From Bigelowiella natans CCMP2755 (lineage: Eukaryota > Protista > Cercozoa), in contig ADNK01000698.1 of the NCBI GenBank assembly GCA_000320545.1, positions 6,286 through 70,285 of the forward strand: a stretch of 64,000 nucleotides of DNA, read 5' to 3'. The translations under genes and the position numbers were made by a program. Positions 3,400-50,365 of this stretch are shown here, one piece after another. Positions within the stretch are counted from its first letter, which is position 1, and the number at the start of each line of letters is the position of its first letter. The notes under the pieces were generated by a model. That model had not been told where the DNA came from and searched no databases. It saw only the letters and a list, made by a program, of their open reading frames with translations.

Positions 3400-3434
<35 letters not shown>

Positions 3435-4585
3435 AGCAGTGGTGGTGGTAGTAGCAGTCGTCGAAGTAGTCGTAGTAGTAGCAGTGGTAGTAGTCATAGT
3501 AGTAGTCGTCGTAGTAGCAGTGGTAGTAGTAATGGCCGTAGCAGTAGTCATAGTAGTAGTAGTAGTCGTAGTAGTAGTCGTAGTAGTAGTAGTAGTAGTA
3601 GTAGTCGTCGTAGTAGTCGTAGTAGTAGTAGCAGTGTTCGTAGTAGTAGTAGTCATATTAGTAGTAGTAGTCGTAGTAGTAGTAGTAGTAGTAGTAGTAG
3701 CAGTCGCAGTCGTAGTGTAGTAGTAGCAGTCGTAGTAGTAGTGGTAGTCGTCGTAGCAGTAGCAGTCGTGGTAGTAGTAGTAGTCGTAGTAGTAGTAGTA
3801 GTAGTATTAGTAGTAGCAGTAGTAGTAGTAGTCGTAGTAGTGGTAGTAGTCGTCGCAGTAGCAGAAGAAGTGGTAGTAGTGGTAGTCGTAGTAGCAGTGG
3901 TAGTGGGTAGTAGCAGCAGTCGTGGTAGTAGCAGTAGTCGTCGTAGTAATAGCAGCAGTAGTGGTAGCAGTAGCAGTCGTAGCAGTAGCAGTTGTCGTCG
4001 TAGCAGTGGTAGTGGTAGTGGTAGCAGTAGTCGTAGTTGTAGTCGTAGTCGTGGTGGCAGTAGTCGTAGTGCACTTGCCACCAGCACCATCATCGCACTT
4101 TCACTCCTCCTCTCCTCCTTCCATCTCCATCTCCTCCCACTGCTCTGCTGCTGCCACTGCTGCTACTGGCACTGATGCTGCTGCTGATGCTGGCTGCTGC
4201 TCCTGTTGCTGCTGCTACCACCACTGCCACTTGTGCCCGATCCTGTTTCTGCAGGTACGGCGACTTCTTGACAGAGTTTTACATCATCGGAACTCAGGAT
4301 TCAGTGGGAAAGCTTGTTGCGCAAAGAAGAAAGAGAGGGCAAAGAAAAAAAAGTGGGCAAAGAAGAAAAAGAGGGCAAAGAAGAAAAAGAAGAAGACAGT
4401 CACCTACCAACGCTCAAAGTCAAAACGTTGGCAGCACGCACAAACCTCGGCGGAGCGAATCTGCCCACATCGCTTCTCCTTCCAAAAAGAAGAAGACGCC
4501 CCCCCCTGTCCCCGTCCGCATGGAATCTCTGCTGAGGGGAGTCCGCTTCCAAGTGAAGAACAACATCGGTGTCGCTGATCGTTGA
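171..4585 (+). CDS. Spliced gene (5' end unresolved or outside window): CCCH zinc finger + class I SAM-dependent methyltransferase-like domain + basic C-terminal tail
   Basis: Exon 1078-1322 encodes CEEFLERGKCSSGPWCPFAH (C-x8-C-x5-C-x3-H). Later exons splice in frame: ~1650-1856 (ALVLDAA..IHVPNPC), 2330-2451 (FGTIYLDYC), ~2715-2831 (LLSPEGCVLAITL), ~3176-3261, ~4256-4585 (YGDFLTEFYIIG, K/R-rich tail, TGA). Exon phases upstream of 1078 and the acceptor near 1649 are not cleanly resolved. Confidence 0.55.
563..790 (+). repeat. Composite local duplication: 563-~705 copies intron ~915-1070, and ~709-786 copies ~1463-1540
   Basis: Near-identical blocks gagtagcatggtgacgcatgattcg...ccccgttgctgttg and aactcacaatgccacat...gggaaggaagaggaagagtgctagga. 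Confidence 0.9.
1893..2300 (+). repeat. Degenerate (TAC)n intronic microsatellite
   Basis: ~400 bp of TAC units with GAC/TGC/CAC variants. Confidence 0.97.
3432..4070 (+). repeat. Degenerate (GTA)n intronic microsatellite, the reverse complement of the 1893-2300 repeat unit
   Basis: ~640 bp of GTA units with GCA/GTG/GTC variants. Confidence 0.97.
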
Positions 4586-5965
4586 AATTGATTGCTGTGT
4601 TGGGGCGTGGAAAGGATTGAAAATAAAAGCGGACCTGTTTGTGCATTGATGGTGATGTGGAATGAACGCGTCTTCGTTTGTTTGTGCTAGCGTTTGTTTC
4701 TGCCTCAATCGATGTGTGCACGTGTGTGACGTTCACGCAAAAAGTGCGCACGCGCACTGAACCGAGTGCGCTTCTTGCCAACAATGCTGGAAAGGGCGGA
4801 GAGCACTTCTAGACTTGTGCATTTACTGTTGCAATCTTTTGTCAAATCGATGGCACCTGCTAGCCTGCTAGCCTGGTTCAGTGACGTCTGCACAGTTGTG
4901 TGAGACACGATGGAAAAAGGTGAGCGGGGAGGACAGGGAAGTTGTTGGAACAAAATCGTGCGATCAGAGACGGTGGCAACGCAAGTCTGGCTAGCTGGGT
5001 GCCTGGAGAACGGCGCAGCTGGCTGCTGGCCAGTTGTCAACACCCGAATTGTCCAGTGCTAGAGTGGTGTCGGACGTGCCAGGAGAACGGACGTGTGACA
5101 GCTTGCCAGCTCACCTCGTGATGAAACTCTCGTCTGGGTGGCTGGTCATCCACCTGGCAATGTGATGACGCAAGCTGCCAGACTGGAAAGTTCGTGTTTT
5201 CGTTGTGCGTCATGCGGCCAGGTTCAGCAGCTCCAGAGCTAGCTAGCTAGCTAGCTGGCAATTTGGCTAGCTGGGTGGCCAGCGCCAGTTGGACGCAACA
5301 GTTCAGACAATGCGTGTCGTTTCTCTGATGCGCACGCCAGCGTGGTGGCACGGTGCAATGGAACCATTCTGCATTGTTGGTTTCGTCTCTGGATCCATCC
5401 ACGATGACTGTTGTTGCGCCTGGAACAAGCTGGCAAGCTAGCAAGCTAGCAAGGTCCAGCAGGTCTGGCTACCTGACCAGCTGGAGGTGCGCTGACAACG
5501 CGACCAGAACGCTGCAACGCTGGAACGCAGCCAGCTGACGCGTGCTGGTCTGGTCAATTGCCAGCTGGCCAGCCTAGCAGCCTCCACAACAAGACAAGTC
5601 TGCAACTCTGGAACTGCGCAAACTAGCAAACCAGACGAAGGACGGCTGCGCGCAACGTGATTCCTAGCTAGCTAGCTCCAGCTGGCTGAGCTGGTGGCTG
5701 CCAGAGCTAGCTAGCCAGCTAGGCACACACAAACATTGCTAGATTGGCACGTCTGTGGCTCTGTGGCTGCATCTGCACCATTCTTAGCATTTCTGCATGC
5801 CAGCACATTTGTTCGTCCAGTCCGCTAGTCCGTGAAGGCAGGTCATCATGCTGAACACACATGCCAGCATGCAACAACACTGATGTCTTCAGTTGTGCAA
5901 AGGAAATGTTCCGACATTTGCTCATCAACACAAAACGTGTCGTGCATTCACAAAATCGTTGATTG

Positions 5966-8900
5966 TCATTCTTCCTCCTCATCACTGCTGCTGCTGCCGT
6001 CATCGTTGCTTTTGTTCTTTGAATCATCCTTGAGATGCATTGTTTCATGCAATGGAATGATTCTCCAGAGCTTCGAGTCGCCTTCAAGAAGCACCTAATG
6101 TCAAGCATGTCGATCATGCTTAGTGATCGCGCGAGGCAATCATTTGAACTGCAATGAAATGCAAAAGCAGAACAGAGAGCATTGTGTGTTGGGGAAAACT
6201 GAAGTCGAAACTAATTCCTTTCAGTGTTCTAACTCCTATTGAAGAAGCGACAGTGCTACCTTTGCGACGAAAAGTTCGACATTGCTAAGAGTCTCTGGCG
6301 AGTAATTGGCTTTGGCCAAGATGTGGTACTTGAGGTACACGTACGCCCAGATGCTGTGCTCTACGGTGATGTGGTGGATGAAGCCTTTGTGGTTACGGGA
6401 CTGATCGAAAGCGTGATGCCCCTTGCGGCAGATGACACACTTTGTTGTTACTTCCTCAAGCACCTGAGATTAGCCAAAAACCGTTTTTTAAAAAACAATG
6501 TAGTGGTGGAAGCTGCATAGTAACTCAGTTTCAACAGCAGCTACATGCGTGCACGTGAAAATGATACGCCCTTTTGAGTTTGGTTGGGTGTAAAATCAAA
6601 TACCCCACCAAGATGGTGGGGGAAAAATAATGAAACATCTCCAACTACAGATGTTACGTCAACCCGAAGAGAAAATACCTGATCTCTCGTTTCGCGCATC
6701 TCCGCGAATGTATCGATTATGATACCGGTGATAATAGACACCAAGATGGTGTTGATGGTAAGGAAGTAAATGAGATTGAACAACGGCGTGATGACGGGCA
6801 CAGGGTCTCGAGTGAAGACAGGGGTGTTCCGGAAGCCAAGATCCACAGCTCTCTGAACGCATCCCCACAACGTGTCGCACATGAAGACAAGATCATCGTC
6901 GACATTGTATACGATCTGGTCGCTGTTGATGAAAAGCAAGAGGCCACAATCAGGTGCCGAGGAGGATGCGAATGCTGAAAAACTAAAAAACGATTCCCTG
7001 ACCTGAAAAACACGAAGATGATGACAGCGAAGCCATAGACAAAGATGAGACCCATGAACACTGTCGCTAACAGCCTCAGATAGTGTCGATTCGTGACGAG
7101 CAAGATGTCCTTCAGGTGCGAGGAATAGGTGATGATATCAACGAGGTGAAAGGCATTCCACATGGGCGTGTGTACAGCAGCAAGAATCGCAAAGATTCCG
7201 TAGACGACGTAATATTTTATCATAGAGAGCCCCAGGGCGCGACGTGTAAGCGTGGTATAACGCCTGAGCTTTTGCACGAAGCTCTCATTATTCTGCCGCA
7301 GCCGCATCTTGTCAAGTGCAAAACCTGTGTGATGAAACCCATGATCGTCATCATCACCGACCTCATCATTTTATCATTTACCAACGGGAATTGCAGTAGC
7401 CTTTCCGTTGCCGACATTCGTTGTCGGAGGCTCCTCGTAATAGTTCGCAAGGCCATTCGAGAGACCCCAAGACACCACCTGGAACACCACCGATGTTGAA
7501 CATTTTCATGCCACACGGACGAAAGCGAGCGCATCCATGACAGCGTGAAGGAAGGAATGAGAAGACATCAACGGCTATGATGGTGACTACCATGAGCGTA
7601 GCAAATCCAAGATGAAAGAACGAGAGAAGACGAAAGACTAAGGAGTACGGATAGCAGCCTTTCTTCTCCTCATCGGAGCCTATCAGCTGAATGCCGTCGA
7701 AACCCAGCCGACAGGTTGCCGTGCCTGTACAACAAACAGTATCACAAATAGGGGGGGAGGTGGGAGAGTGAGTAGGGAGTAGAAAATCTTTTTAGATTTA
7801 GCTACTTTCTAACAACAGGCGGCTCAGTGCTGCACCCCCTCTTTCCTTTGTAACGAAGTTCGCAAGATAACACATCAAACACAACCGACCGAGGATGCGG
7901 AACTCGAAGAATTCGTCTTGGACGGTATCTGTTGTCCCCCAGCTTATCAGCAGCCCATTGATGATAAGCACCACGCAATACGTGATGATCCATAACTCGT
8001 CAAAGTGACCTCGGAGAAAATGAGTCATTTGAACCACCTGCACAAACAACAGCACCAAGAAGTTAGCAAAGGTCTATGTTTTTATCAAGATGAGTTTCAT
8101 CTGATCTCTTACCATATTACAGGTGCAGAATAACACTTGCTCTCAACTCTGCCCTCTCCCCTTCCCTCTCCCATTTCATGACATCAAGTGCTTGTAGCAA
8201 CTTACGTTCTTCTCGTGCTCCTCGAAACCAAAATTTCGAAGAAAGTTTGGCATCCGCACGTTGTGAAACTCGGAAATTTTCCACAATTGCGCCGATTTTT
8301 GCATGAGGTCGATGATGCGTTTGTCGTGGCGCTTCTCTCCGATTCTGACGCAGGAATCGCGGATCTGGCGTTTCATTTCGACGGCACTACCAGTCTCACC
8401 CAACGTAAAGAACCAAGGCTTTAAGAAGAAAACACGCTCGTTGCGCTCATGATGCCCGTTGTTGAGTTTCACCTCGCATTGCATTAGCATTTGTTCGAGA
8501 TAATACCTTGAAAATAAAAAAAGAGGGAAGGGGAGAGATTGCGGAGACTCATTAATATCGACGAGACCAGAACAATGTCGATGACTACCTAAAAAAATGA
8601 TGTAAGGCACATGGTGTAGATCGACAACACCCACGCAAAACACAGCATCTTCCTAACCATCCACACTCCCGACGGGAGAAACGACAAAATAAAGGAGGAG
8701 GAGGAGGAGGAGGGGGAAGAGGAGGAAAAACTCGAAAACCGAACATATATCTGCCAATATGCGCTCATCGCTTCACTCACTGCGGCTCGATCTTCGGGTT
8801 ATACTTCCATTCCGAGACTTTCTGCTTCCAACGGGACAGGTAGGTCGACACGTTCTTCACCTTCGACTTGTCTGAGGCCTCCACCACCGTGGTCAGGTAG

Positions 8901-36371: not shown

Positions 36372-37114
36372 AAACGGATGGGCAGGAGAGAATAATGTCG
36401 GTCTAATACGCTCATAGTTGAAGCATGCTCATTGCACTCGTTCGCCATGCCACAATGTTGTCTGAATGCACAGTACATAATGCGTGAAAGTGATTGGGAA
36501 AAATTAAACATTTCATTACATACACCGTCTCATAATAATGCGCGTGGAAAGTGAAGTCTGTCATTGATCATCCTGCGCGCATGCATGCATTGTGGCATGC
36601 AACAAATCATGTGGACATGTTTGTCACTAGCTCTAGAAGACATGCTAGCATGTGCATGTACGTCTCATGTGTGCTGCACAAAATTGCAAATCCATTTTGG
36701 GCAATCGATCTAGCAATGGCATGTGCATCTCTAAATCTATGCATCTAACTAGCTAGATGTACCATGATCGAATGCAACACAGCTAGAGATAGGCACACGT
36801 ACGTGGAAGGCTGAAAGATGACATGACCATTGGATTCACATCTGAACTTGGTGCAGTAGCGCACCCCCGTTTGCGACAAGCTTGCTAGCTAGAGATGACG
36901 ATGTGCTCAACGCTCGCTAGCGCGTGCGATGCAGTCGCGCGTGCACTCGTAGGTCGATCTAGATCGACATGTGACGACATCACATCGCACACGTAAGAAC
37001 GAGTAACATCGACAAAATGCTTATCGTGCTAAAGATAAAGGCTCATAGATTTGATGGACCAGAAGCTATCATTCAGGATTTCTCTAGCTCTGCTGTCTGG
37101 GTGGTTCCTATTTC

Positions 37115-40842: not shown

Positions 40843-41700
40843 TCGCGTTGCTTTTTAGTATAATTCTGCATCGTTGAAGATTTAGGATCGCTAGATAGGG
40901 CTGTAATATGGTTTATTCTAGTAGGCGCCTAAGCGCTTGATAATTACGTACTACATGGCCTTCGCACTGCTCCTGCAGGCATACCGAATCGTGTTAGTGC
41001 ACGATTGCTTGCATTTGGCGCGGCATATCCATCCATGCAATATCATCATCATGCACTGAAATCTGACATTTAGTAGCGTTATTTCATATGCACATGTGGC
41101 GTGCTAGCGCCATGCTAGAATGGCACACATCTGGACATGTACAGGTCTAGAGGTGCGCGCAGCAGAACTACTAGACTAGTATATACTGGACAAAGTCGAA
41201 CCATCGACCTAAAGCGCGATGTAATATCGATATCAAAAATGTGCTAGTGCGTCATTATAAGGACATGCTTGCATGTATACATGCGCACAGCATGCTAGCA
41301 TGCAAATGAGCTAGAGAGGCAAAGCTAGCAAAGGTTGTCATGATAGACATGCAACATTGTATATGCATGATTATGATAGACATGCGGTGTCTCCGGCCGC
41401 TCATGCTAGCGTTGTGCATGCGTCACTTGCTGTGATTATGTAGTGATGGAGAAAGCATGCGCACGCATGTGTGTGTTGTGCACGTCATACACCTTTAGAC
41501 ATGCTAGAATGTACTTGATGTACGTGCAGCAGTGAAAATGAACACTACCGCATCATACTAGCAAGCATGCATGAAAACAATAGAATCGGACAACAATTGG
41601 CATGATAAAAAATTCAATTGGTCTACTTCTTTCAAATTTGTAAAATGGTGCGAGCAAGAATCACGCTCCTATTCGTGTGTTGTGCGCTGCAAGCAGCGAG

Positions 41701-49160: not shown

Positions 49161-49303
49161 TGTAGATAGAGAAAGAGAGAGAAGTGATGACATTTCATCA
49201 GCAGAATCAACAACAACGACAAACACCTTTACATTTTTGCACGCGAGACCTAATTATTTGAGTCGTGCTGGCGCACGTAGTTGTTAATAATGATGGGCCA
49301 CAC

Positions 49304-49338
49304 AACGTAAGGGTGTGCAAAACGTAAGGGTGTGCAAA
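49304..49338 (+). repeat. 17 bp tandem duplication
   Basis: aacgtaagggtgtgcaa occurs twice. Confidence 0.9.
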
Positions 49339-49935
49339 CCATGCTGCTAGGCAAATTTAAAACAGCGCATGCTAAATGCACACGTACGTGTAGGATCACT
49401 GCACATAGCTAGACAGCACAATGCGAACAAAGGCAATAATAATGCTGTGTGTGCTGGGCGCATGTGTTTGCATGCCTGCACGTTGTATATGCTAGTATGC
49501 TTGCACAATCTTGCATTATTCTAGACATCAATGTACTTTCTATATAAGCAACCAGAAGCTAGTCAGAAACTAGTCACACTAAGTGCCGGATAAGCGCATC
49601 ATGCTATGCTAGCATGCGCGCGCAGTATGATTATCGGTCAAACTGCACGATCGATGCGGATGTTGTACGTGCGTGCTGTCGATCTAACATGTCTAGATGT
49701 CACAATACACCGCGTAGGTATCGCGTGCATGTTGACCGTGATTGTCGTGCAGTCGATCACGCGTGCGGAAGCACATGTCATGCTTACTTATAACACTTTG
49801 ACTTAGGCTACATTTAAAAGCACGTATGATGCTACGTACATTCACAAATGTGCATTGTTTGTATATGGCCACATATATATGCTGTTTTCATGCATGCGCC
49901 ATGTGACCAAGGAAACAAATAGATACAATTTAAGC

Positions 49936-50361
49936 GCTGTAGCCGCTGCATTGCATAGCTACATCAGGATGACCATTGAAACAATTTAAACATTTCATTA
50001 CATCCGTCTCATATATATGCTGTAGCCGCTGCATTGCACAGCTACATCAGGATGACCATTGAAAAAATTTAATTTGTTCATTACATCCGTCTCATATATA
50101 TATGCATACACATAGCGCATATATGTGTACACAACTAATGACTTAAAAAAGGGCTCGCACCGGCTGCGTGCACTGCCCGACATCGACGACTGGACATGCT
50201 AGCATGGATGCTTTCAAATGCATGAAACACATTGTGGAAAAAACAAACACACACACACACACACACAACATAAGGGCTGTAGCCGCAGCTTTGAACAGCT
50301 ACATCAGGATGACCATTGAAAATATTTAATCAATTCATTACATCGCCATCCGTCTCATATA

Positions 50362-50365
<4 letters not shown>
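49936..50365 (+). repeat. ~83 bp repeat, three copies (49936 and 50019 in tandem, 50276 dispersed), with an internal hairpin
   Basis: gctgtagccgc...gctacatcaggatgaccattgaaa...ttcattacat..ccgtctcatatata, with TGTAGC/GCTACA inverted arms. Confidence 0.9.

Follow-up and report, generated by a model that had tools for sequence, protein, structure and literature searches.

The spacer between two convergent genes in the 64-kb stretch of Bigelowiella natans DNA analysed here (the window) has lost nearly all of its TpA dinucleotides except those in the word CTAG. This pattern very probably reflects two superimposed processes: the insertion of CTAG as a scar, and hypermutation of TpA to TpG/CpA, neither of which is a decay of CCGG. 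The conclusion draws in part on the mapping of 168 published mutations and on islands collected with a sequence seed, using the 91.4 Mb assembly (3736 contigs).

Positions 4681-6180 contain 28 TA against 82 expected from composition, and 23 of them lie in CTAG, the others being in CTAA (1), CTAC (1), TTAC (1) and TTAG (2). The same segment has no CCGG, 24 CCAG, 25 CTGG, 18 TGCA, 8 CATG and 74 CG. The initial annotation had counted about 23 CTAG, about five other TpA and no CCGG, figures that proved exact, and it was also right that several tens of TpA would be expected, that CCAG and CTGG are abundant and that other CpG remain common; CATG, which it listed as abundant, shows no special excess. 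The rho values of the island (TA 0.34, CA 1.59, TG 1.62) lie within the limits used to define TA-poor clusters in this species (TA ≤0.43, CA+TG ≥1.52), and its length is below the 3-kb minimum applied there (10.64898/2026.01.13.699255). The loss of TA is a local island. Elsewhere in the window there are 55-133 non-CTAG TA per 1.5 kb, while in the erased zone there are 0-2 per 150 bp against 6-12 expected, and positions 4824-5470 form the longest gap without a non-CTAG TA in the 64 kb. The features of the region are listed in Table 1.

Table 1. Coordinates of genes, composition features and CTAG scars in and around the spacer (window positions).
Feature	Position	Strand	Details
Left gene, last coding exon	4255..4585	+	Stop 4583-4585; GT..AG introns ending near 4252 in RNA-like run; translation
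TpA-erased zone	4350..6150 (edges approximate, ~1.8 kb)		Extends into the last coding exon on either side
183-bp segment with one TA-rich paralogue (G000:C1085)	4600..4783		80% identity; polarises substitutions
Convergent spacer core	4681..5870		7.4-fold excess of C-Y-R-G words; exact NNNN-CYRG-NNNN scars at 21 positions
Single scar ACTT-CTAG-ACTT	4805..4816		
Double (re-targeted) scar CCTG-CTAG-CCTG-CTAG-CCTG	4856..4875		
Mutated scar AGCT-CCAG-AGCT, then CTAG run ending CTGG	5229..5258		
Triple scar on CAAG	5426..5453		One core CTGG, two CTAG
Further scars	5516..5871		Cores CTGG 5520, 5608; CTAG 5574, 5623, 5668, 5739, 5825; CCAG 5864
Right gene, last exon	5848..6094	-	Stop 5966-5968; CT..AC introns

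A single repeat family whose consensus already had this composition can be set aside, as a DNA search found the island to be single-copy; its sole matches were the 183-bp paralogue and a 49-bp low-complexity match. A coding origin was likewise rejected (no ORF, no Pfam match), and beside the 183-bp duplicate no viral or transposon sequence and no repeat family could be recognised in the spacer. Two DNA runs compared with the reference over 4065-8200, where few targets remain, showed no differences. Milder CTAG/CATG islands occur at 36550-37050, 41050-41600 and 49300-49750, with scars present and much TA intact, and those at about 41.3 and 49.5 kb also appear to lie between convergent genes. 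An 83-bp repeat with an (AT)n tail is found in CTAG islands (window positions 49885-50363 and 36501-36535, and loci L005 and L033); its copy in an erased island has lost GTAA and kept GTAG and CTAC.

The island is the spacer between two convergent (tail-to-tail) genes, as RNA-like contigs carry GT..AG introns on the left and CT..AC introns on the right. Raw RNA reads cover the exons, with almost none over 4664-5845. The loss of TA reaches both flanking last coding exons: that of the left gene has 3 TA against 18 expected, and in that of the right gene the 131 coding bases contain no TA, compared with 35 across the 867 coding bases upstream. The last exon of the left gene has no Pfam match, and a homology search with a myosin fragment, limited by query length, gave no match. 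The right gene probably encodes an IP3-receptor-like channel, judging from a resemblance at its C-terminus (a weak ITPR match, E 0.11, in one exon only). Introns of the left gene contain or adjoin two long degenerate tracts, (TAC)n and (GTA)n in opposite orientation (1894-2290 and 3433-4070), and the second is TA-rich despite ending 300 bp from the erased zone. Local duplicates occur at 563-800, 915-1080 and 1465-1560; the differences among them amount to an insertion of 15 bp and a small number of transitions.

Hypermutation of TpA to TpG/CpA has been measured in mutation-accumulation lines of B. natans (Mettrop et al., bioRxiv 10.64898/2026.01.13.699255). According to this preprint, integrated viral DNA is hypermutated about 1000-fold, nearly always by TpA to TpG/CpA changes; 230 of 231 hypermutations are A:T to G:C transitions and one is C>T. 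The targets are integrated NCLDV and virophage DNA, the NCLDV target being single-copy, and 124 TA-poor clusters were found genome-wide. ADAT2-like adenine deamination is put forward there as a hypothesis for the agent, a candidate only, and the preprint makes no mention of CTAG, CCGG or wider context. Its Table S2 contains many de novo insertions ending in ACA (or TGTG), several of which adjoin a substitution, and these are possibly the trace of a second stereotyped insertion or footprint process.

Substitutions in the spacer can be polarised with the TA-rich paralogue. The window copy has lost 12 of 13 TA and kept the CTAG at 4687, and at 23 of the 29 differing positions it carries an A>G or T>C change. 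Both TA to TG and TA to CA changes occur, on both strands. Several TA have progressed to CG, so CpG is partly an end product. The paralogue and the published measurement together uphold what the initial annotation had proposed, a change of A to G at TpA on either strand with a polarity opposite to that of fungal RIP, TA being lost and not created. Its alternative agent, a TpA-specific adenine deaminase, is also the hypothesis of the preprint. The TA component of the island is thus an already known process; it has been shown in this species, and its action at the spacer is suggested by the paralogue and by a matching context spectrum.

The context preference of the mutator was derived from the published mutations. 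On contig C3187 the mutation positions could be placed at one unique offset, with 42 of 44 falling on TA, a fit that confirms the genome as that of B. natans, and 168 of the 210 listed A:T to G:C mutations of scaffold 10 were mapped over 120 kb, 164 of them on TA. Over these 120 kb none of the 164 changed a CTAG, against 6.2 expected (P=0.002). Relative rates per available site were 0.31 for CTAC/GTAG, 0.48 for CTAA/TTAG, 0.74 for GTAC and 1.15-1.63 for the others, and the flank effects were 0.44 for G after TA and 0.61 for C before TA. C before TA and G after TA are each protective, and CTAG is the least mutated context, slow and not immune: the zero count bounds its relative rate below about 0.5, and simply multiplying the effects of the two flanks gives 0.27, a value compatible with that limit. 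Three of the four off-target mutations were CA to CG, and one of the 168 was at AA. The TA classes left over in pooled erased islands anticorrelate with the de novo rates (rho -0.87, P=0.0025, nine classes); this inverse ranking ties the islands to the same mutator. Among the non-CTAG TA left in the spacer, four of five belong to two slow classes. The context rule is an addition to the published mutator, absent from the literature searched, and offers a fingerprint for testing ADAT2/3-like candidates in vitro.

Slow mutation does not explain why CTAG is so frequent. The whole C-Y-R-G family is in 7.4-fold excess, so sparing of CTAG alone is insufficient. The initial annotation had explained the excess without insertions; it is accounted for by 8-bp scars, each consisting of an inserted CTAG and a duplication of four, sometimes five, target bases. 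In the core, 14 of 23 CTAG are flanked by identical 4-mers (10 non-self, against 0.7 expected by permutation), as are 7 of 49 CCAG/CTGG (5 non-self, against 0.4). Similar results came from 29 other islands, a biased sample because they were gathered with a CTAG-rich 18-mer seed: 150 of 603 CTAG have a flanking repeat against 3.3 expected, with a peak at 4 bp and a minor one at 5 bp, and none of 27 CCGG has 4-bp flanking repeats. Exact 8-bp tandem repeats number 26 in 29 similar islands against about one expected, and there is no such excess for 7- or 9-mers. Filled and empty sites, both in the arms of an inverted duplication and in a 40-copy MITE, differ by CTAG and the target duplication, which identifies the scars as insertions. 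The target preference is [AC]NN[GT] (276 sites, with the strands pooled, which forces symmetry).

Scars pile up in tail-to-tail spacers and reach about 15 per kb in the one studied here. The CTAG run within 5229..5258 would represent scars inserted into CTAG itself, and the 39 CCAG/CTGG left once exact scars are removed may be older scars. The link between scars and erasure is loose: some islands rich in scars have kept their TA, and mutation has struck the NCLDV region, which is nearly free of scars (one in 120 kb). The preprint lists 21 de novo indels, and CTAG occurs in none of them (10.64898/2026.01.13.699255).

The direction of change runs from CTAG to CCAG/CTGG. In the seed-collected islands, a biased sample, the ratio CTAG:(CCAG+CTGG):CCGG is 200:56:7 in TA-intact islands and 163:166:7 in erased islands (Fisher P=1e-12), and mutated scars rise with local erasure from 11 of 76 (14%) to 46 of 123 (37%). 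A single MITE site holds the scar as CTAG in one element and as CTGG in a second, and the two copies of a hAT target duplication differ in the same manner, CTAG standing against CTGG. CTAG is therefore the precursor. A single mutation removes its TA, so CCGG is almost never reached.

These data run opposite to the order proposed in the initial annotation, in which methylated CCGG deaminates to CTGG/CCAG and then to CTAG, with Pol eta-like patch repair changing A to G at nearby TA. The proposal drew on the absence of CCGG from an island rich in CCAG and CTGG, and C5-methyltransferase and Y-family polymerase domains do occur in the genome. The absence of CCGG is real, yet within chance: 0.7 (from local CCG and CGG) to 1.9 (from the window rate) would be expected in 4681-6180 (P(0)=0.16), 10 of 42 1.5-kb windows also have none, and the actively mutating region shows no depletion (170 against 151). 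Nor does CCGG share the 4-bp repeats seen at CTAG and CCAG/CTGG (0 of 27). In the baseline, about 7 of 31 C>T changes are at CpG (hand count; P ~0.65, n=32), compared with 20% of C/G in CpG, and there is only the one C>T among the 231 hypermutations. A polymerase of the eta type would mutate A at both TA and AA, with transversions; AA (93 against 79 expected) and TT (81 against 85) show no loss at WA, and the mapped mutations include the single AA change noted above. Deamination of CCGG with such repair is thus extremely improbable. An intronless C5 DNA methyltransferase ORF with hydrophobic ends (PF00145, E 3e-77) lies beside a TA-poor stretch at L034:1024-2955.

It might also be supposed that CTAG is unprotected and that the scars are merely younger than the erasure of TA. 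Most CTAG in the spacer are insertions, and MITE copies without other TA carry intact scars, in line with this view. It is nevertheless quite improbable: the de novo shortfall of CTAG (0 against 6.2) was found in a nearly scar-free region, the CTAG at 4687, which belongs to no scar, was retained where 12 neighbouring TA changed, and a third of the scars in erased DNA are mutated, so that many predate the erasure.

The most likely cause of the scars would be the insertion and excision of a cut-and-paste element whose ends read CT..AG or CTA..TAG, which fits a constant core between target repeats. A search for the donor covered hAT elements, a CACA..TGTG MITE and DDE_3 transposases, with 15 Harbinger-type DDE_Tnp_4 loci left out, and found none; DDE_3 gave no match, and a scan of the collected loci for terminal inverted repeats gave no candidate. 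The 8-bp target duplication of hAT elements was rejected as the source, because a scar with a single CTAG implies a duplication of 4 bp, and the hAT found locally has TAG..CTA ends and duplicates 8 bp. An apparent CT..AG element at L051:690-1525 proved to be the left part of that hAT, and the CACA..TGTG MITE was rejected as donor since its duplications are 2-3 bp.

Several of these elements have features of their own. The hAT transposons (L050, G000:C2351, ~208030-211890; and L051:685-4660) have TAG..CTA-type ends, 8-bp duplications and TA-erased interiors (1-7 TA per 500 bp, compared with 15-53 outside), the transition at their edges being fairly sharp. The MITE is about 405 bp long with CACA..TGTG ends and is present in at least 40 copies (L052-L089, e.g., G000:C3123:177421-177825) of 90-95% identity with 0-8 TA each; the copies also contain numerous 3-bp duplications and other small insertions. 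A near-perfect 290-bp palindrome lies inside an integrated NCLDV stretch at L039:951-1240 (G000:C3187, ~100950-101240).

The main rival to a cut-and-paste element is a host enzyme that makes topoisomerase II-type breaks with a 4-nt stagger at the supercoils of convergent transcription, a fixed CTAG being added on repair and the TA mutator remaining as described. Scars do cluster between convergent genes, no donor was found, and Top2 breaks in yeast give 4-bp duplications by end joining (10.1101/2020.05.03.075358). The accessible part of that report mentions no constant insert in those duplications, a fixed palindromic core is the expected trace of element ends, and the same spacers contain MITEs and footprint-like 3-bp duplications; an origin from such breaks is accordingly unlikely. 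A broader proposal has the host mark its tail-to-tail spacers by means of a non-transposon enzyme that cuts with a 4-nt stagger and inserts CTAG, the same chromatin or convergent RNA recruiting the TpA adenine mutator. This is decidedly unlikely; if true, the mutator would edit not only foreign DNA but also the ends of host genes.

Slippage might have expanded a (GCTA)n microsatellite that has since decayed, or the motif might act in termination; either would account for CTAG runs with period-4 spacing at gene 3' ends in an SSR-rich genome. Tandem repeats of 4 bp are not above Markov expectation, whereas those of 8 bp are (26 against about one), and most scars are a lone CTAG between unrelated 4-mers that is missing from sister copies. 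Such an origin is highly improbable; slippage is largely refuted for isolated scars and may lengthen CTAG runs.

Taken together, two processes would explain the spacer. A stereotyped insertion adds CTAG with a duplication of 4 (sometimes 5) bp, preferably at [AC]NN[GT] targets, and accumulates in tail-to-tail spacers. The TpA to TpG/CpA mutator would have acted on some 1.8 kb of this locus, reaching into the last exon of each gene, perhaps drawn to the spacer by visits of mobile elements. CTAG is the slowest context, the C before and the G after TA each slowing the mutator, and one mutation converts it to CCAG or CTGG with its TA gone. In other contexts a weaker CA to CG step produces CpG, which thus stays common.

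The island shares with the published hypermutation of B. natans (10.64898/2026.01.13.699255) the species, the assembly, the change of TpA to TpG/CpA on both strands and the TA-poor, CA/TG-rich composition. It differs in that the preprint concerns integrated NCLDV and virophage DNA, whereas here a host spacer of 1.8 kb is affected together with the ends of two host exons, and in the 4-mer context rule. The range of the mutator would accordingly extend beyond integrated viruses to host intergenic DNA and coding exon ends.

Pol eta, in immunoglobulin hypermutation, changes A to G with TA among its hot contexts; the B. natans signature lacks the AA component, is essentially without transversions and has no accompanying C to T changes. 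Excision of Tc1/mariner-type elements leaves a footprint consisting of the target duplication and a few terminal bases. The scars resemble this in placing a constant core between direct repeats of the target, and their target preference reads as symmetric, as pooling the two strands forces it to; a variable 4-bp duplication with a CTAG core could be matched to no superfamily, and no donor was found. They resemble the products of Top2 breaks and end joining in having 4-bp duplications from a staggered cut, and differ in that no constant CTAG insert is described in the accessible part of that report (10.1101/2020.05.03.075358). The scars are an addition beyond the known mutator: searches on CTAG footprints and on CTAG in chlorarachniophytes returned nothing relevant, and a CTAG core with a 4-bp duplication points to a mobile element or repair activity not found described in the literature searched.

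Fungal RIP is a local, dinucleotide-directed and strand-symmetric hypermutation that leaks into neighbouring DNA. The loss of TA in the island is likewise local, dinucleotide-directed, strand-symmetric and leaking. It differs in that RIP changes C to T and creates TpA, whereas the island has changed in the opposite direction and is nearly single-copy. A comparison with RIP is also drawn in the preprint (10.64898/2026.01.13.699255).
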